Assembly: GCF_006345805.1 (NCBI RefSeq)
Contig: NW_021825022.1
Location: forward strand, 1-16,946
DNA: 16,946 bases
Direction: 5' to 3'
DNA from: Octopus sinensis
Lineage: Eukaryota
Both the position numbers and the translations under genes were made by a program. The first letter of the stretch is position 1; every line of letters starts with the position of its first letter. This document shows positions 1 through 16,946 of the stretch, in pieces. The notes beneath the pieces were generated by a model. The model was not told the DNA's origin. It did no database searches and saw nothing but the letters and a program-made list of their open reading frames with translations.

Positions 1-655
1 TCCTACAAAATGACGACAAATGAGACCATCATAGCTGAATCAAATGCCCCCACAAGAATGTAGTCAACCACAGACTTGGCGTTTATTCCCCACACAGCGG
101 CAGGGGACACACCTTCGTCCACCACACTACCCGTCTCGACTGGTGAAATAGACTGCTCCAACTAATTGATTGGACACAATCACCAACTTCAATTGGAAAG
201 TCAATATCATCGACATCCCATCCCTCATCATCCAATAGTGTCTTCTCAACGTCACTCTCTTCTAGACATGGCCAAATGACCAGTTACTGTCAAAATCCAA
301 ATTCGCGTCATTCCCCCAAGCAGACACATCCCCCACGACCTCTTCTGGCTCATCACATTTAAGAAGGGCGTCTCCAATCACTGACGTCGATGCATATTGT
401 GGCCAATTGGAAGTAAGAGTTATCAAGGGAGGAGAGGGGAGAATTAGAGGGGGTGAATCATCCACGGGAGGCACTTTCTCTATCAACTGAGACACCTCTG
501 TCAATCCATTTCGTCCCATTGACGTTAAGCCCTCGATCTGATTTCCCGTGAACAAGAGATTTCGTCCCATTGACGCTGGACAGATTGAGACTTGGGCAGC
601 TTCGAGCCAAACTGAGGCTCTCACAGACCACAGGCGGCAGAGTAATCGTCAGACA
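1..655 (-). pseudogene. COPA: Internal fragment of coatomer subunit alpha gene; disrupted, non-processed
   Basis: Manual translation gives ...PPLILPSPPLITLTSNWP...VSAWGNDANLDFD...DDEGWDVDDIDFP...GVSPAAVWGINAKSVVDYILVGAFDSAMM. This parallels alpha-COP (LLQPPAPIMPLDTNWP...GWGEDAEL...GWDVEEDLELP...[29 protein letters not shown], from memory). Two -1 frameshifts, a 51-nt in-frame insertion, and a 24-nt GT-AG intron at 3-26. The 5' side abuts a LINE RT fragment; that boundary is approximate. Confidence 0.8.
508..575. repeat. 17-nt direct repeat (508-524, 559-575) flanking a 34-nt insert
   Basis: ATTTCGTCCCATTGACG occurs twice exactly. Spacer 525-558 is TTAAGCCCTCGATCTGATTTCCCGTGAACAAGAG. Confidence 0.95.
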
Positions 656-956
656 ATTTCCGTTCGGGGAGGTTTCCTTTTTCTTTACACCATCTTGCAA
701 TCTTATCAATATGACCAAGAGTTATTTTCCATGATATTGATTTGCTCATGGAAAGATCTATAAGTAAAATATCATCTTCATAAATGACCATCTCCATGTT
801 AGGATGATCCACTTTGGGAATGTCACACATCTTATAATTAAATAAAAGTGGATTGATGACAGATCCCTGTGGAACTCCTCTCATAAGAGAAATTTTCCTC
901 GACAATTGGTTTTCGACGCGTATGAATTTTTCTCTTCCCGAGAGGAAACTCTTCAT
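656..956 (-). mobile_element. Non-LTR retrotransposon (LINE) reverse transcriptase fragment, inactive
   Basis: ORF 621-956 contains SFLSGR...RGVPQGSVINPLLFN...IYEDDILL...IARWC, the GVPQGS and YADD-region motifs of LINE RT. The catalytic motif reads YEDD. Truncated on both sides. Confidence 0.9.
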
Positions 957-3180: not shown

Positions 3181-3736
3181 CGTGCATTAACTAACTAACT
3201 TTCTCTTGATTTTGTTAATTTTACAATTAACTTTTACATTCTCAAATCTCAATTTATTTAATTTATACAAATTTAGATTGAGATGTTCAGCGTTACTTCA
3301 CTCTGATATTGATAATTGCGAAAAATGTAATTCAATGCGGCACATGGTCGAAAACAATTTCCGCTTCCAACCTCGGTATTTAATTGACGTCGAGCATAGA
3401 AAGAGACCCAAGCGATCGTAATCTTTACAATTGCTTTATTAAAACTAAACTTGAGTTACATCAAAACATTATTTTAACAAAGTAATATGGATTTATTTAA
3501 TGAACATCCGCAACAATCCATTTGACGACATAAACTAAGGAATATGTCTTTGTCAAGGAAATTAATGATCACTCTGATTAGTAATTAAGGATAATTTAAT
3601 AATTCTGGTGGCGTACACAGATCTCACAATCTCCCTAATTCTTAATTTACTATCCTCCACTGTGAGTATTACATTTTGACATCAGACAAGTCAAATTCGA
3701 ATATAAATTTTATTATTTGAATAAATTATTAAATAA

Positions 3737-4487
3737 TTGTACGACTCGGAAAGCAGCACAGATGGGTGGCCTTCACAAATTCTCTACGAAGACATGACCA
3801 ATGCATTCATCCTTCTCCCCCTGTCGAAGAGGACGACTGGAACATCCCCTCAATCCACCTCACCAACATCACCCTTCAATCACACCCAGTCGGACTCCTC
3901 CGTCTGTCCATCAACCCTATTTCCGCTACCGTGGAAGGGACGAGTGATACCCCTCCACTTGCAGAGGACACTGTCCTTCTCCCCCACAAAGACACTCCTC
4001 TACGTTAAAGAAATATTCGGCCTTGTTGAAAAGCCCTCCTATGTGGTCGGTCTGTGTGAGGAAGCTCTCGATCTGATTTCCCGTGGAATAGTTCTCAACA
4101 ACACACAAGTGTTCTGTGTCCCCCAAGACCCCACACTCACTCAATTTGTCTTCAATGTCGACTCCCTTAAACAGTCTCTTCTTGGAGGTCTATTTTAGAA
4201 CACGTGGTTTTGACGCTTCTTGGATTGGGAACACTTAACCACCTCCAGGTTGTTTTATTTAGTCTTATTTCTAGCACTTGGACTACTCTGACGACGAACA
4301 GGAGAAGTGTGCCCGACTCGAGTCTAAACTGGGAGTCAAAAATGAGGAGGCTATACGAATTCGCCAACAAAGGAAACAGAGATTGATCAATCGAAGAAAA
4401 CCCCCCACTATGGGAATGTGGCCTCCTCCTTGGCGATATCCGCCACGATCTGCCTACCCTTACTATCCTTTCTACCCACCATTTTGA
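3737..4487 (+). pseudogene. NAF1: H/ACA snoRNP assembly factor NAF1, disrupted copy
   Basis: Stitched frames: PPVEEDDWNIP...TPPLAEDTVLLPHKDTPL / YVKEIFGLVEKPSYVV...RGIVLNNTQVFCVPQDPTLTQFVFNVDSLKQ | TRGFDASWIGNT*PPP | LDYSDDEQEK...Pro/Tyr-rich tail. This is the Gar1/Naf1 domain plus the DASW...EPPP...DFSDDE motif. Micro-introns at 4174-4198 (25 nt) and 4249-4274 (26 nt). Lesions: TTG at the likely start, frameshifts near 3810, 4000 and 4275, and an in-frame TAA at 4236-4238. Confidence 0.8.
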
Positions 4488-4749
4488 TTTACATTATTTT
4501 ATAAAAGATTAAGACACAGTTGAAATGATCCTACTTTGTCTGATATTTGGAGTATTTCTCTCTCCGTAGGAATAAACTATTAAATCACCTCAGCCTGTAT
4601 AAAACTCATTTCTAAATAATTTTCCGAAAGACAAAAATACTCAAACACTCATTCCATTTAAGAAGTTGTACGTGGTCTTCCTATAGTCTTGTAAGAAACC
4701 AATTCTCTATCTATTATACAAGGTTTTTATTTTTCTTTATTTGTCATTG

Positions 4750-4824
4750 TAGTCTATGAATACGTTTATGTTATTATTAATTCTACTATTCCCACGAGTA
4801 GAAATAGTCTATGAATACGTTTAT
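4750..4824. repeat. 20-nt direct repeat (4750-4769, 4805-4824) flanking a 35-nt spacer
   Basis: TAGTCTATGAATACGTTTAT occurs twice exactly. Spacer 4770-4804 is GTTATTATTAATTCTACTATTCCCACGAGTAGAAA and contains a 7-bp hairpin (TTCTACT/AGTAGAA). Confidence 0.95.
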
Positions 4825-5010
4825 ATTCTATCGACATGTCCACAAAATCTTAGAGAGGATGTTGAAAAAATGGCATAAGCGGAATGCACAAGTTGCGGGG
4901 AAAGCGATATGTGTTAATAATAAATTAAGTAAATAAGTCCACAAAATAAATCAAAGGATAACAGTATTAGTAAAACTAACCCATTAAACCAAGAAGAGAG
5001 TCAATATGTT

Positions 5011-6955: not shown

Positions 6956-9080
6956 TCAGGAATAAATAAGCGGAATGTCATTAAAGAACATTACTGGAGC
7001 AGTTTTGAGTAAATCATGTGCATGTAGATAGCAACTCGAAGCCTTCTCATAATCACCGGTCGATTCGAGGACCTTTCCAAGTAATCCCCTATTAAGTACT
7101 GCTAAAATAATGAAAACCAGGATCTATGCTCAAAAGGATCCACCTTAATGGCCTCCCTAAGATAGTTTTCTGATTCTGAAAAAAGTTCAATTTCATAATA
7201 TGGCAAACCCTAAAATTAAAAAAATATATAACCAGTTCATAAAGAATGTCAAAATTCCTTGGATCAACTGCGCTCAACGTTAGAAACCACTCGAGAGCCA
7301 AATCGTTCATTTTTGTAGCACGCAAAAATTTAACTTTCTTTAAAATATTTTTATCGCTAATTTACCATAATTTGTAGATTTAAAGAGTTTGGAGATATAT
7401 TATGTGCTTCAATTAAACATAGCTTCACATCTTCGAGCTTATCCAGTCCAAGAAAAATTTCAGCTTCAATTTTAAAAAACAATTTACCAGTTCGTAACCA
7501 AATTTTGAATTCGTCAGGATCAGACTTACACCATTCTCTGTTATTGCAATAACAATTCGCCACATTTAAAAAATCGTCCAAATTTAAATCGAGGTTTGTT
7601 TCTTTGCATGTGTTTCCATTTTCTTGTTCTGTAACAAATTCCGACTTTCCCGGACTATTTTTCTCAAATTCAGAAAAGTTACATTTTGGTCAACATTTTA
7701 CCACACGTTTGCAAAGCCGAACTAAAATCACCCAACTCGGACTCGATGCAACTCTTGATCAGGAAAAAGCTTAAATAAACGTCAAATTGAGTTCTACTTT
7801 GATGAGGACGGATATTGCATTAAAGAACTCTCCACACATTGGATGGCTGCTCCATAGTCTTTAGAAGCAGTAAAGAGCAACACCAAAAGAGTCAAAGTAG
7901 TCTCTTTATGCCAATTAAGTCTGATAGCTAATTTGCAATAATGAAGAGCTCTATCAATCCTCCTTTCTAGGGCGTAGTAAAGTGACAGGTGAAATGCAGG
8001 AAGATAGTCACGTGGGTCAGCTTCATAAGACCTAGAGGAAATCAGAATACCGGATTTGTACCTGTTCAAAAAATCTAACGCAGCGGATAGGTGAGTAGAA
8101 GATTGAGAAAAAATTTCCTGTCTTCTGGAAATCAGAACGTGATAGAGACCACAATAAAGTAAGGCACGAGAATGAAAAGGAGAAGAACCGTCACACAGAT
8201 CTAATAGTTGTTTAGTATAATCCTCAAGTTTTTGGTCAATCGGCTATATTTATGTATTGAAATTATTTACCAATGGACAATGTGGGTCAAAATGTATACA
8301 AATAATGTGTGTAAGAGTATCGATGTCTCCGGGGACAAGAGAATTACAAACTTTGAGAAAATGATAACATTGTTTGTACTAATCAATAAAAAATAAATGT
8401 TTACTTTTTTTTCTTGGGCCAGTGTAAATGCAAATTGCCGTAAGGGATAAAAATCCACGAGACAGTATTTAAGAATGTCCCACAATGCCTGAAATAAACT
8501 GAGAACAAAAAACTGAATTGAGTCTACAGGGAGACGATAACTGCCCGAACAGTAGACAATAATAATTCGCCAATTTGACAGTTTTGGGGGATATTTCAAT
8601 CTGGGAATCGGCAAGCTGTAAATTTAGACAAAAATATGTTCACCAGTAATGGTTTCATTAATTTTTGATAGACGCTTATCAAATAGCAAAGTTCCTCTTC
8701 CCGATTTAAATCAAGGAGACTAAAAACCTGTAATAAAAGCATAAATACGTGGATTGGGATAGATTTGTGTCCCCCAACTCAGAAATAGACTCGGAAACAG
8801 ATTCGTAGTTATCAGATGTGGTCTCATGAAATAAAAAATCAAAGTATCGTTCAATTATACTCTGTTATGTTAATTCATCCAACTTTACCTTGTAAAAATT
8901 GGTCGATTTCTCAATGTTGTCTACAACTAGCAAATCTCTGAAAGCTCTTATGGCTTGTTTGGAACAGAGGGACTTGGAAGCGATTAACAAAACGCATCCA
9001 GGAGAGGGTGGGACAAGCGAGATAACTTTACTCACGTTATTTTGCGGTGTGCTTATTAATAATAATAAGGAAGCAAACAA
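6956..9080 (-). CDS. TTC7: Tetratricopeptide repeat protein 7 (TTC7/Ypp1 family, PI4KIIIalpha scaffold); 5' end not located
   Basis: Thirteen GT-AG introns of 23-30 nt (e.g. 8862-8888, 8032-8061, 7464-7487, 7089-7117) splice to one open frame: AIRAFRDLL...EEELCYLIS...SRALLYCGLY...RSYEADPRDYLPAFHLSLYYALERRI...IWLRTAEIFLGLDKLEDVKLCLIEA...SENYLREAIKVDPFEHRSWGLLGKVLESTGDYEKASSCY...APVMFFNDIPLIYS* (TGA 6956-6958). This is colinear with the TTC7A/B C-terminal two-thirds. No start codon or N-terminal exons were recognised. Confidence 0.9.
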
Positions 9081-9129: not shown

Positions 9130-9555
9130 GGTGCACTTTTTCTGTTTATTTGCTATTCAATTATCTGTTGTTTCTATCTAATATTTCTGATCTATCTAAT
9201 CCTTTCCTATCCATCTAATCTTTCTTTGTCTATTTTTTTCTATCCATTATTCGTTCTGTTCTCATTCCTCCATATGGTGGTCTCTCATCCCACTCTTAAT
9301 CCCGTTTCTTCCTGCTCAATCTGCAACATGGTTAACAAAAGAAAGAACGGCCGTCCCTGCTCATCGTGTTATCTGTTCTTTCATCTTTCTTATGTCTCCC
9401 TTTCCCGCCGCACTTTGGAACGTATTCCATCTTGGGTCTGTCCCGCCTGTCTTTCCGGCACCCCATCATTTTCATCCCCCATCAGCCACTGCCACTCTCG
9501 GCTCATCAAACAAACGTCGGCCACTTTGATGTTCCGGATCTTCCTGAGCAAATGA
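9130..9555 (+). mobile_element. Probable 5' end of a LINE: CT-rich leader plus decayed PHD-finger ORF
   Basis: CSIC...RPCSSC...FHLSY...WVCPAC (9313-9450) has PHD C4HC3 spacing, with one Cys read as Tyr (TAT 9391-9393). It is intronless and follows a low-complexity TCTATCTAAT-rich stretch. The PHD is seen directly; the LINE origin is inferred from PHD-bearing ORF1s of CR1/L2-type elements. Confidence 0.5.
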
Positions 9556-10493: not shown

Positions 10494-10957
10494 TTACAAC
10501 TGTAGACTGGGAATGTTAGTAAGCAAATTAAACCAGAACTGGGGAATGGTGAACATATTTTCCCATTTCCGTGACAGTGGTGGAGTGCATAGGCAGTGCA
10601 CAGTCCGTCCACCTAAATGAGTAGTTTCCCCCTCAATTTGAATTTCCATCAATTTATCAATTGGACTGACATAAATTGTCCCCGTGGGCACTGAGGATAC
10701 TGTCCAGGAAAGAGATAAAAGTTGGTCAAGTCAGAGGGAAGGACATATTTGTTGAGTGAGTAAGGACAGTATCACATTCCACTCCTCGATTTGAGTAATG
10801 GACACTCCATACCCCCCAGATTTATCATCGACTGTCACGAAGGGGAGTCTGTCTGAGAAAAGTCACGGAAAATGTACTCAGGTAAGTTAGTGCGCTCTCC
10901 AGGAGTGATTCACTAGACTGCATGTCGTTCGGTTTTCCCCGACAGGATGTTTTCCAT
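10494..10957 (-). pseudogene. Unidentified disrupted reading frame
   Basis: About 150 codons are readable across two frameshifts and one TGA (ESLLESALTYLSTF...GGYGVSITQIEEWNVIL...PTGTIYVSPIDKLMEI...). GC content is above the flanks. No family recognised. Confidence 0.3.
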
Positions 10958-10971
10958 TTTTATTGATTTAG

Positions 10972-11960
10972 AACATTCTGGAAGGCGACCAACTTCCCTC
11001 CATTTCCCAACTCAAGACTGACCCAACATTCGTGGTGGAGGTAATCCACAACCAGCAGTTCCCCATCCTCCACTTGCTGGTCGAGTATGGCTTCACTACG
11101 TCTGGTCGGTCTCTGGGTACTCCTTCAGGCATATTCCAGTCTCGGGGGCCACTGCTCTTATTGCTGCGGGCCAGTTCTACGAGATCACTGTTGGCCAAGG
11201 ACTCGGATCCGAACGAATTCGACTTGCACTACTCCCCTCATGTACGCAGTCAGGGAGAACGACACAGCACTCGTCCGACTACTCCTCCGATATGGAGCCT
11301 CCACCACAGTGCCTCCCAAGCCGGAAAAGTCGTCGGAGAGTGGGTGGTCAGTTGTAGTCTCGCCGTGTGTTTGCAAGTGTGGGGCAGTGCAGAAGGGGAC
11401 ACCCATTCACGTATGCCCTCTCTCCATTGATAGGAGGACGCCTATGAGAATCCATCATTCTTAGTATTCGTGAAAAGAACGTCGAGTTGCTTAAATTATT
11501 GATGGAGTACAGGCAATACATTCTCCACAGTGTTGTTAATGACTATAGTGCTCTCATTGAGGCAGTCAAGTACCGGTCGGATCAGATCATCGACGTGCTG
11601 TTGGAGATGCCTGGTTGTCCACCCAGACTGACTGTGTTTAGATGTGGTCAGTGGAATTAATGATGTCTGTGGGTCTGGCCTAAAGACGGCTCTGTCCATA
11701 GCGTGCAAACACGGGCATTCAGACATTGCAGAACGACTTATAGGACTGGAGGCGAATGTGGAGTTGGGTGGACGGACTGCCCTGATGGAAGCATGCCGAG
11801 ACAGTCACTCTACTGTTGGACAATGGGGCTAATCCTTGTGCCCAGACACACCTATCTACGGTCATGTTTGCTGCGGAAACTGATTCCGTGTTGGTCATGT
11901 CCACTTCCATGCAGCGCTTGACTCTCGAGACCGGTATATCTCGTATATTTGTGGCTTAAA
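10972..11960 (+). pseudogene. Ankyrin-repeat gene copy, MASK/ANKHD1-like repeats, multiply frameshifted
   Basis: TPLMYAVRENDTALVRLLLRYGA; SALIEAVKY; KTALSIACKHGHSDIAERLIGLEANVELGGRTALMEACRDSH / LLLDNGANPCAQT, resembling MASK ADIELGxSTPLMEA. Micro-introns at 11411-11433 (23 nt) and 11614-11641 (28 nt). At least four frameshifts or deletions. Confidence 0.8.
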
Positions 11961-12379
11961 GTCTGGCAGGTCAGCACAGGACATACAGGTCGTGCTTTCC
12001 CCGATCACCAAGTCCAACTCAGTGCATGTCCTCAGTCTATACCTTCCCAACAAACCACAACTGAGAATAGACGTCAAAGTACAGTTTTGCGAGACAACTG
12101 GCATCGACGGCCTCCTGGAAGTATTGGTGAACTGATGTGCAGATGAGAGTGTTGATGTAGTCGTGTCCTCCGCACTGATTCCCGCAAATGAAGCAGCAAT
12201 CAGTCTCCAACACGATTGGGGACCCGACGTATCAGACATTCCTAAATTGGAGGTCGAATGGCTCCTCTTTCATCATTTGTTGTTTTGTTAAAATCCCTGC
12301 CTGTCGCACATGTCGCTATTACTTGGCCAACTTATTTCGATTACTCGCAAGTTAAGTGATTTTGATATTATTCTAATAA

Positions 12380-14162: not shown

Positions 14163-16206
14163 AATTAAAATTTTTTTAAAACTACATTTTTTTTTTAAAA
14201 CTACATTTTTTTGATTTAAATCAGATTTTTTTGAATTAAATGATCTTTATTTCAAAACGACCCTTTCCACCTGGCTTATCAGAGAACCTCTCTCTTTGTA
14301 CATAAACACTGAAAAACGGCCACGCAGAACGATCTATCGTAGTTCCTTATGTCCACCGGGATCACTTAACTAGTTTGCATTACGCTTTCTTTCTTTGTGG
14401 TCTTCGGGTTAATAAATAAAAAAATATTTCAAAGCGAACTAAAATAAAAAACAAAAACAATGGAAATCGTTTTTATTTATTTAAAAGCTTGTAAATGGAA
14501 ACAAGTTTGGCTGCTTTTTCGATCCCCAGCCTATTGCGTACATTTGAATGTAGAAATCCGAATGTTGAAAAGATTCTTTCTATTCCACCTGTCGAAGCAA
14601 CTGCTCCAAGAATTTTTTTGCATAGTGAAATTACTTGTGAAGGTAACTGGTATGAATTCGACTCCCACCAAGCTATAGGTGATACTTTACTCAATAAATT
14701 CGGAGCAAACATGTATTGTTTAAATGGATCAGCTTTTGCTCTGAAATTAATCAGAGTCGGAAGTGCATATTCATAATTTTGAGCACAATAACTCAATGCA
14801 ATGTCAATCTCAACATTTGAAAGAGATTTCCCACTACATGTCGGGTCGATCAATTTGCAAGTAAGTGGAAAGGTGTTAATGCTTGTTTTGCTCGAATTCT
14901 CACTTTTCCTAAAATATTCGTACATCCATTGTCAATATATGTCTGTTCAAGTTCTTTCCAAATTTCTACAGCATGACTAATCGTGGTAGAATCATTCTGA
15001 ATTTTATCTAAAGCGACAGCAATTGGTTTAATAAGCATCAGATATTCTTCAACGCGTCGTTTTAGGGAAATATTTTGGACCTTGGAAAAAATCTCTGTAT
15101 CAATATCCGTTCTGTGTTCCTCACAAGTTCTCAAAATAATAGACCAATTATCCAGATAAGATTGAAAACAGTCTGATAAAGTGTTCCACCGTACATCAAT
15201 CGGAAGAACGAGTTTTTTTCCTCCATTAGATTTGTACCATGCAGCTGGAAGATGGACGTTTCGGAAATATTTATTGATTGTTACAATAGTTCCTTTAACG
15301 TCCGCTACCTCGACATCCTTCACAAGAAGGTTGAGATAATGTGCCGAGCAACCATAAGTAATTATTTCATTGCCATCTTCCATCATTATCCGTCTCATTT
15401 TAGTCATGTTGGCAGCATTATCCGTTACAAGACTGCCGATTTTACATCCAAACCGTTGTTCAGCCAATTGTGCGGAGGCTAAAGCAACAGATTGAAGATA
15501 TTCCGCAGTGTGGCTATATCCAGAAGTGTCCACAGTGTCAATGAGATAATTTTCCCCATCTGATGTCACAACCGAGACACAAATAACGGGTTCATTATGA
15601 ATGTTGCTCCACCCGTCCAACATCATAGACACTGTTTTGTCCTGGAGTCTTTGTCGACAGTCTTCATGTATTTGGTCGTACACATGATCAAGTAATGTAC
15701 CACCAATTTGATGACGAGAGGGTAAACGATACCCAGGAAGAAGCATTTGGACGAATTTGACAAATTCGGGATGTTCTACAGCAGCAAACGGAGTGTTTGT
15801 AGAAAATATGTATCTAGCGAGTTGCAGATCCATCAAATCTTTCTTAGATGAAGTCGTCGTAGTTACGAAATTGATTAATGAATGGTCCTTCATCCTTGGA
15901 GGAAATTCGCTTTCAGGTCTCGGCATATTTTTAGGGATATCAATATTACTTCGACATAATAAATGATGCTGCCTCATCCGAGATACAAGACCTTGTATGT
16001 CCTTCCCACAATTACGACATCTGGCACGGCTTCCGGTCTTTCCAGGAATAATACGTTTATCAAAATAAGCCACAAAGAATCACGCTTTCTTCCAGACATT
16101 TAAAAAAATTTAAATGATTTTTTTGATTTTTTTGATTTTTTTTAATGATTTAAATCATTGATTTTATTGTTGATTAAAATCAAATGATTTAAATCTAACA
16201 ACCCTG
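14163..16206 (-). mobile_element. hAT DNA transposon (BED finger/DUF659 type)
   Basis: Right terminus CAGGGTTGTTAGATTTAAATC (minus strand, 16206-16186). Clustered palindromic TGATTTAAATCA and GATTTTTTT subterminal motifs at 16110-16200. One GATTTAAATC remains at 14213-14222. The left TIR was not found, so the left boundary is approximate. Confidence 0.85.
14473..16099 (-). CDS. hAT transposase, ~540 aa if two single-base deletions are corrected
   Basis: ATG 16099: MSGRKRDSLW / AYF...ARCRNCGKDIQGLVSRMRQHHLLC (BED finger), LDGWSN, VTDNAANM, CSAHYLNLL, DVRWNT, WWES, STGGIERIFS (DDE triad and dimerisation domain). Frameshifts near 16070 (GGG>GG) and 14852 (TTT>TT). Confidence 0.92.
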
Positions 16207-16946
16207 ATACAAATAATGTGTATAAGAGTATCGATGTCTCCGGGGACAAGAGAATTACAAACTTTAAGAAAATGATAACATTGTTTGTACTAATCAATAA
16301 AAAATAAATGTTTACTTTTTTTTCTTGGGCCAGTGTAAATGCAAATTGCCGTAAGGGATAAAAATCCCCGAGACAGTATTTAAGAATGTCCCACAATGCC
16401 TGAAATAAACTGAGAACAAATAACTTAATTGAGTCTACAGGAAGACGATAACTGCCCGAACAGTAGACAATAATAATTCACCAACTTGACAGTTTTGGGG
16501 GATATTTCAATCTGGGAATCGGCAAGCTGTAAATTTAGACAAAAATATGTTCACCAGTAATGGTTTCATTAATTTTTGATAGACGCTTATCAAATAGCAA
16601 AGTTCCTCTTCCCGATTTAAATAAAGGGGACTAAAAACCTGTAATAAAAGCATAAATACGTGGATTGGGATAGATTTGTGTCCCCCAACTCAGAAATAGA
16701 CTCGGAAACAGATTCGTAGTTATCAAATGTGGTCTCATGAAATAAAAAATCAATGTATCGTTCAATTATACTCTGTTATGTTAATTCATCCAACTTTACC
16801 TTGTAAAAATTGGTCAATTTCTCAATGTTGTCAACAACTAGCAAATCTCTGAAAGCTCTTACGGCTTGTTTAGAACAGAGGGCTGAAATCAGCAGACGAT
16901 CTTGAGAGAACTATCGAGGAACAGAGGGACTTGAAGCGATTAACAA
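16207..16946 (-). pseudogene. TTC7: Duplicated internal segment of TTC7 (copy of 8296-8990), runs off the window end
   Basis: Manual alignment shows about 16 substitutions over ~665 nt, all micro-introns retained, one 1-nt deletion and a 46-nt insertion at 16873-16928. It starts at the base immediately after the hAT terminus. Confidence 0.93.
16873..16928. repeat. 10-nt target duplication (16873-16882, 16919-16928) flanking a 36-nt insert
   Basis: GAACAGAGGG occurs twice around CTGAAATCAGCAGACGATCTTGAGAGAACTATCGAG. The paralogous empty site (GGAACAGAGGGACTTGG, ~8961-8977) has a single copy. Confidence 0.95.

Follow-up and report, generated by a model that had tools for sequence, protein, structure and literature searches.

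How does a short piece of one protein-coding gene come to lie, in the opposite orientation, inside another gene a few kilobases away? The question is raised by the left end of the window (the whole stretch of 16,946 nt analysed here), where a piece of the gene for coatomer subunit alpha, COPA, on the minus strand contains a tract almost identical to coding sequence of the NAF1 gene on the plus strand. A first-pass annotation, made without database searches, had read this tract as a templated insertion copied from a host gene rather than from a transposon, and we have re-examined its anatomy, its source and the nature of both genes.

A compound block inside the COPA piece

The region comprises five segments, of which the third has its counterpart in an exon of NAF1:

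508-524: left copy of a 17-nt direct repeat, ATTTCGTCCCATTGACG, a target duplication, reading (A)SMGRN on the COPA sense strand
525-526: junction filler TT, 2 nt, without an identifiable template
527-550, plus strand: NAF1-derived 24-nt tract AAGCCCTCGATCTGATTTCCCGTG, in the NAF1 sense and antisense to COPA, matching 4062-4085 at 23/24 positions
551-558: junction filler AACAAGAG, 8 nt
559-575: right copy of the 17-nt direct repeat, ATTTCGTCCCATTGACG, identical to 508-524
4062-4085, plus strand: donor tract in the NAF1 exon, encoding (E)ALDLISRG

The two copies of the 17-mer, between which the 34-nt filler (525-558) sits, form a perfect repeat. The 17-mer occurs exactly twice in the whole window with up to three mismatches tolerated, and none of 200 shuffles matched it twice; the only non-AT-rich local direct repeats of at least 12 nt in the window are this pair and an event at 4750-4827, which is described below. 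The inserted block amounts to 51 nt or 17 codons, is stop-free in the minus-strand frame of COPA, and adds the codons LLFTGNQIEGLTSMGRN directly ahead of GLTEVSQLIEK; upon deletion of 525-575 in silico the downstream COPA frame is unaltered. Both the 17-nt flanking duplication and the preservation of the COPA frame (+51 nt), which the first-pass annotation had described, are therefore borne out. A random insert of 51 nt would be in frame and stop-free with a chance of roughly 15% by our own estimate, so this property is unremarkable. The GC content of the block is 47%, compared to 49% for the COPA exons, and the predicted pre-insertion (empty) site is TCCATTTCGTCCCATTGACGCTGG. The filler AACAAGAG is possibly an error-ridden extension of the NAF1 copy (the donor goes on GAATAGTT), a resemblance that is not significant. 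An inverted match of 8/9 nt between 532-540 and 582-590, seen in the fold, was discarded as being at chance level, with about 0.7 expected by our own estimate.

The 24-mer is present in the window in two copies (527-550 and 4062-4085), both on the plus strand and 3,535 nt apart in cis, with one mismatch and an exact core of 19 nt. It found no match in any of 200 shuffles, and the longest exact repeat anywhere in 100 block-wise shuffles was 13-17 nt. Self-BLAST of the window at E<1e-3 returned three pairs only, namely a 676-nt repeat, its short continuation and the 24-mer itself (E=2.8e-4). Strict local alignment of both neighbourhoods recovers exactly 24 nt with a score of 43, as against 21 for the next-best match of the 34-nt filler in the window, and detects no homology between the COPA and NAF1 neighbourhoods on either side of the tract. 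Gene conversion, segmental duplication and a shared transposon are excluded by this lack of flanking homology. The patch is antisense to COPA, because NAF1 is read from the plus strand and COPA from the minus strand. Accordingly, four statements of the earlier annotation survive the analysis: a match at 23/24 nt was confirmed by search, alignment and self-BLAST, its source is NAF1 coding sequence (in the Gar1/Naf1 domain) about 3.5 kb away, its orientation is opposite to that of COPA, and its length is beyond what chance provides in a window of this size.

The product of the 24-mer, ALDLISRG, aligns to SDHIESKG of human NAF1 within the Gar1/Naf1 domain, where both proteins have equal length. 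Since it is in-frame domain sequence that aligns to human NAF1 without an insertion, the 24-mer is, as judged from the sequences, native to NAF1 and foreign in COPA, and the direction of transfer runs from NAF1 to COPA. The same observation bears on the notion that the 24-mer belongs to a dispersed repeat, such as a MITE, a SINE or a small-RNA-derived element, or represents a functional motif occurring in both genes, with the 17-nt repeat as its TSD. This explanation would account for an insert flanked by a direct repeat, but we find it very improbable: the 24-mer has two copies only within the 17-kb window, it is ordinary domain sequence in NAF1, the 34-nt filler carries no terminal inverted repeats, it has no Rfam match at gathering thresholds and no tRNA, and its fold is not significant (z = -1.3). 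Moreover, we know of no cut-and-paste transposon superfamily to which a 17-nt TSD would be suited. The 24-mer, with Y at the variable site, was absent from metagenome and viral contig collections, where an animal genome is not expected.

The sole difference between the two copies, C531 versus T4066, falls on the third position of a NAF1 Ala codon (GCC in the copy, GCT in the donor) and is synonymous; the substitution may postdate the event, in whichever copy, or the donor may have been allelic or paralogous, and it is the rest of the genome that would discriminate between NAF1 donors. The event is recent, because there is 1 difference in 41 duplicated bases, a divergence about equal to that of the 676-nt repeat in the window (97.6% identity).

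Donor and recipient in a genome with ultra-short introns

Besides the block itself, two genes and one neighbour have to be considered:

1-648 (to about 650), minus strand: recipient, the 3' part of a COPA gene that leaves the window at its left end (Pfam COPI_C, E=6.8e-11)
3823-4490, plus strand: donor gene NAF1, with the Gar1/Naf1 domain and a C-terminal tail (Pfam Gar1/Naf1; human NAF1 structure 2eqn)
5817-5011, minus strand: Prx6 (peroxiredoxin-6)

The key to reading these genes is provided by Prx6, which encodes an intact protein of 219 aa after removal of five GT..AG introns of 25, 30, 40, 24 and 28 nt, and whose product is at most 57% identical to any database protein (among 5.8 billion). 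Because Prx6 is intact only when these 24-40-nt GT..AG introns are spliced, COPA and NAF1 were re-read for short introns. The confirmed introns in the window measure 24-40 nt and most of them are visibly AT-rich. Among animals, introns of such sizes have been reported only for myxobolid myxozoans and Dicyema (PMC13644364). Taken together with the low identity of Prx6 to known proteins, they suggest that the window derives from a long-branch parasite of this type, probably a dicyemid or a myxobolid. Programmed +1 frameshifting and a ciliate-type code, which were entertained for the frame changes in NAF1 and COPA, were dropped in view of the canonical introns of Prx6. An insertion in the style of a ciliate IES with 17-nt pointers was dropped as well, given the metazoan-type genes, the spliceosomal introns and an identifiable donor next door.

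The COPA piece was aligned to residues 782-942 of mouse COPA. On the minus strand it contains introns at 287-262 (26 nt), 187-162 (26 nt) and 27-4 (24 nt), one COPA intron having a GC content of 46%; the two apparent frameshifts are the 26-nt introns, the terminal "stop" is the 24-nt intron, and after splicing 197 codons can be read without a stop between 648 and the window edge. All of the frame changes in COPA are thus explained by introns. The last intron follows ...SAM(M), and the COPA fragments P0001 and P0002 turn intron-like at the same place (AMKVS / AMQVS). Upstream, N-terminal exons of COPA were found nowhere in the window by tblastn with the N-terminal and C-terminal halves of human COPA, with which only 24-158 matched, and the space upstream of the piece is taken by other genes (NAF1, Prx6). 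Within the window, the COPA piece is truncated and not decayed. The earlier description of it as a fragment holds in so far as no N-terminal part is present in the window, but the frameshifts are three introns of 24-26 nt in an open reading frame. Since the introns are retained, a chimeric retrocopy that arose when reverse transcription switched between LINE and COPA RNA is excluded as well.

The insertion lies beside the conserved HGL-EEA motif, with GLTEVSQLIEK aligning to HGL-EEA-L of COPA homologues, and the upstream copy of the 17-mer starts directly after CCAG on the COPA strand. At this motif the 17 residues are missing in mouse COPA and in 3/3 distant homologues, a comparison that is a short motif alignment, COPA being strongly divergent just upstream of the repeat. 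An exhaustive HMMER search with the COPA piece among 1.84 billion representatives found 3 exon-sized COPA fragments only, at 32-35% identity. Protein homology searches for close relatives of COPA and NAF1 with stitched translations gave no matches, and look-ups of the exact products of 3 window ORFs found nothing. The internal evidence of the window suggests that the block was inserted into COPA.

In NAF1, where tblastn with a human NAF1 query also found the DASW and DFSDDE motifs, the introns are at 4174-4198 (25 nt) and 4249-4274 (26 nt), and one of three apparent frame problems is such an ultra-short intron. The other defects, two of 1 nt each, lie in homopolymers, C5 (3981-3985) and GGG (4227-4229); removal of one base at each restores an uninterrupted ORF with a stop at 4488-4490. 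NAF1 may be a very young pseudogene with real lesions, or the defects may be long-read indel errors. The latter possibility has a bearing on the block in COPA, as an error of long-read assembly or polishing, or a rare somatic allele, could be held responsible for it. The homopolymer defects in the adjacent gene are what long-read indel error predicts, and the animals with such short introns were assembled from PacBio reads polished with Racon (PMC13644364). Long-read errors, however, are indels of 1-2 nt, whereas the block measures 51 nt and combines a perfect 17-nt duplication with a patch that matches a site 3.5 kb away, and Prx6, at a distance of 5 kb, is free of frame errors across its five introns; an artefact is therefore hardly to be expected here.

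The short introns also prompt the question of whether the block might be a young spliceosomal intron, or a segment of an alternative exon, in a functional COPA gene. The block is of the right size for a genome with introns of 24-40 nt, and the COPA frame is open once it is spliced. There is also a precedent in Daphnia, in which introns were gained by insertion of sequence at staggered double-strand breaks in exons, leaving flanking direct repeats (PMC4202315). As here, the Daphnia inserts are surrounded by short direct repeats, and their size is comparable to that of the introns in the present genome; the Daphnia repeats are, however, 4-12 bp long as opposed to 17 nt (PMC4202315). A further difference concerns splice sites. 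Whichever register of the repeat is chosen, there is no GT..AG pair that would remove precisely the 51 nt, as the sole GT register ends with AC, and the only in-frame GT..AG options remove 54 or 60 nt (591->538, 591->532) and would delete neighbouring codons. Besides, the GC content of the block is exon-like, against the AT-richness of most confirmed introns (the 46% GC of one COPA intron notwithstanding), and upstream exons of COPA are missing from the window. We consider an intronic origin highly unlikely; because no splice-site pair removes it, the insert is coding, or inert, rather than intronic.

Probable templated repair and its alternatives

The combination of a target duplication, filler, a discrete patch from a donor in cis and again filler argues for break repair with templated synthesis. 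We consider it probable that the block is a patch templated from nearby NAF1 DNA by error-prone, synthesis-dependent end joining. The process would have begun with a double-strand break inside the truncated COPA copy, and repair would have been carried out by polymerase-theta-mediated end joining or by SDSA with template switching. One of the broken 3' ends would have been briefly templated on the NAF1 exon, either 3.5 kb away in cis or on the sister or homologue; about 24 nt would have been copied before dissociation and rejoining, leaving 2 + 8 nt of junctional filler. The 17-nt repeat could have been generated either by fill-in of both overhangs of a staggered break, which would yield a target-site-like duplication, or by copying of a second short tract from the other end of the break, in which case the whole would be a compound templated insertion. 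The net product would be a gain of 51 nt, in-frame and stop-free on the COPA strand by chance. Microhomology at the junction is weak (TGACG in the acceptor versus TGAGG in the donor, 4/5, offset by TT).

The most likely donor is the adjacent NAF1 copy or an allele of it, since for a genome of tens of Mb we estimate that a random donor would fall within 3.5 kb in only about 1/10,000 of cases. In a survey of human repair-mediated duplications by Pace et al. in 2009, the donor was within 5 kb in 824 of 1,136 events; all of the inspected proximal duplications showed hallmarks of double-strand break repair, i.e. microhomology of 2-9 nt, filler of 1-68 nt and a TSD of 4-21 nt, and none had poly(A) (PMC2671141). 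Our case resembles them in that unique sequence was taken from a donor less than 5 kb away in cis, with filler and a TSD-like duplication and with no poly(A), and exonic donors are possible among them too. On the other hand, the patch described here is only 24 nt long, as compared to inserts of at least 50 bp (a lower limit owing to the detection threshold) with a median of 147 bp (PMC2671141), and its microhomology is marginal. The acceptor is coding sequence here and a transposon there, and the host is a long-branch invertebrate with ultra-short introns rather than a vertebrate.

The second group of known products comprises the inserts made by polymerase theta (TMEJ delins, filler DNA, SD-MMEJ), which share with the present block tracts of a few to tens of nucleotides from nearby DNA, a compound make-up from several templates including the flank of the break itself, and junction bases that are non-templated or contain errors. 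Compound polymerase-theta insertions are reportedly described by Schimmel et al. (2019) and in the TMEJ literature. In classical TMEJ, however, the template is found no more than tens of bp from the break, whereas here one of the templates is 3.5 kb distant, and TMEJ is usually accompanied by deletion, whereas here the net result is a duplication. A direct duplication of the target is predicted by fill-in of staggered breaks at both ends, which generates small tandem duplications with the help of CST/Pol alpha-primase and NHEJ (PMC8355091). A 17-nt duplication as observed here is in agreement with this mechanism, but the known events are purely tandem, and in our case 34 nt of foreign filler separate the copies (PMC8355091).

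The copied piece is internal coding sequence of NAF1, about 400 nt upstream of its stop codon, and it is confined to a single exon, which makes a DNA and an RNA template indistinguishable from the tract itself. A piece of NAF1 transcript could have been reverse-transcribed into a break or nick, either by LINE TPRT (as in a class 1 TSIP) or as a reverse-transcriptase patch (class 2), the 17-nt repeat being a LINE-type TSD. A TSD of 17 nt is within the LINE range (about 7-20 nt), the donor is exonic, a LINE-type reverse-transcriptase fragment about 50-100 nt away indicates that LINEs were once active in this genome, and both classes of TSIPs are known in humans, where, as here, part of a transcribed host gene has been placed at another site and class 1 has a TSD (PMC5110952). 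Nevertheless, class 1 TSIPs carry poly(A) and an L1 nick-site motif, neither of which is present here, and class 2 TSIPs lack a TSD and are derived from distant RNA templates, whereas our donor is adjacent (PMC5110952). The insert has no poly(A), A-rich or LINE 3' tail, its ends being TT and AACAAGAG, and there is no T-rich nick-site motif (e.g. TTTT/A) at the TSD borders CC|ATTTCG and TTGACG|CTGG, although the specificity of the LINEs in this genome may differ. Furthermore, the copied piece does not include the 3' end of an mRNA, the tract is only 24 nt long, and its orientation, antisense to the adjacent COPA and reverse-transcriptase strand, does not allow for a simple template switch while that strand was being made. 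A cis donor 3.5 kb away is what DNA capture predicts and would be a coincidence of about 1 in 10,000 for an RNA donor, in line with the contrast between proximal and distant donors (PMC2671141). Altogether, we judge the RNA-templated route unlikely, and a DNA template, presumably provided by the NAF1 neighbour during break repair, accounts better for these features. With a discrete 24-nt NAF1 patch that has no transposon, tRNA or Rfam features, the proposal of the first-pass annotation that the template was a host gene and not a transposon is upheld.

Surroundings of the block and significance

Next to the COPA piece lies a further rearrangement:

621-956, minus strand: LINE-type reverse-transcriptase fragment (Pfam RVT_1; motifs GVPQGS...YEDD)

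The fragment shares its strand with the COPA piece, adjoins it on the 5' side and is cut off inside the reverse-transcriptase domain. Because its homology extends to at least 675, the junction between reverse-transcriptase and COPA-like sequence is within 576-675, about 1-100 nt from the insertion, and the interval 576-650 may be a COPA exon, a COPA intron or something else. The ending of the fragment beside the COPA piece places a second rearrangement breakpoint within about 100 nt of the templated insertion, and a single complex repair event could have produced both.

A second scar with the order repeat, filler, repeat is found 4.2 kb away, where a 23-nt repeat with one mismatch (4750-4772 and 4805-4827), reading TAGTCTATGAATACGTTTAT(G/A)TT, encloses a 32-nt filler (4773-4804). 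The filler contains a 7-bp inverted repeat, TTCTACT ATTCCCACG AGTAGAA, and the scar looks like a snap-back templated insertion; a snap-back-type hairpin of this kind resembles the products of polymerase theta. No convincing donor for this filler was found in the window, the best match being weak and gapped (3638-3668).

The remaining features of the window are the following:

1256-1275 and 1684-1703: inverted repeat with perfectly matching 20-nt arms, AAAATAAATTATTTTCCTTT / AAAGGAAAATAATTTATTTT, which are separated by 408 nt and embedded in AT-rich DNA; possibly the two ends of a small MITE
7092-8069, minus strand: three ORFs in a row that match TPR/ANAPC3 weakly and look like exons of a TPR-repeat gene
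8296-8990 and 16207-16946: direct repeat of at least 676 nt, 97.6% identity, 7,911 nt apart, extending to the right end of the window
9226-9555: ORF with a PHD finger
10500-12300: block with a GC content of about 50%, in which both strands carry overlapping ORFs, with an ankyrin-repeat match at 11087-11464
14473-16073, minus strand: hAT-family transposase (DUF659 and hAT C-terminal dimerisation domain) in two overlapping ORFs of 407 + 150 aa, possibly connected through a short intron or a frameshift

The 676-nt repeats, which could be LTRs or a segmental duplication, enclose the PHD-finger ORF, the GC-rich block and the hAT transposase; the PHD-finger ORF and the GC-rich block may be part of a CR1-like LINE or of another element.

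There is ample documentation, from vertebrates, flies, worms and plants, of both templated filler insertions and proximal repair-mediated duplications. The kind of event that we consider probable here is thus already known, and a single instance adds little; on the other hand, we know of nothing on break repair in divergent animals with introns as short as these. The value of the locus is that of a very clean natural example, in which 4 kb of sequence suffice to show the donor, the acceptor, the two junctions and the target duplication. A more far-reaching, and in our opinion improbable, reading is that the COPA piece, whose three introns and 197-codon frame are intact, is still alive and maybe transcribed, and that the antisense NAF1 patch is an in-frame addition to its coding sequence that became fixed recently, or raw material from which a micro-intron could develop; in a variant of this reading, NAF1 RNA may have been the template of the patch, and the enzyme the LINE reverse transcriptase of which a fragment is preserved nearby. 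If this were true, a break-repair patch would have been caught in the act of seeding coding or intronic sequence, in one of the few animal lineages with introns shorter than 30 bp.

For the annotation of such genomes, the locus carries a warning: the frameshifts of a "pseudogene" can be ultra-short introns, and short in-frame insertions can be scars of repair. A census of repeat-filler-repeat events could measure how often break repair contributes coding insertions or proto-introns to ultra-compact genomes.
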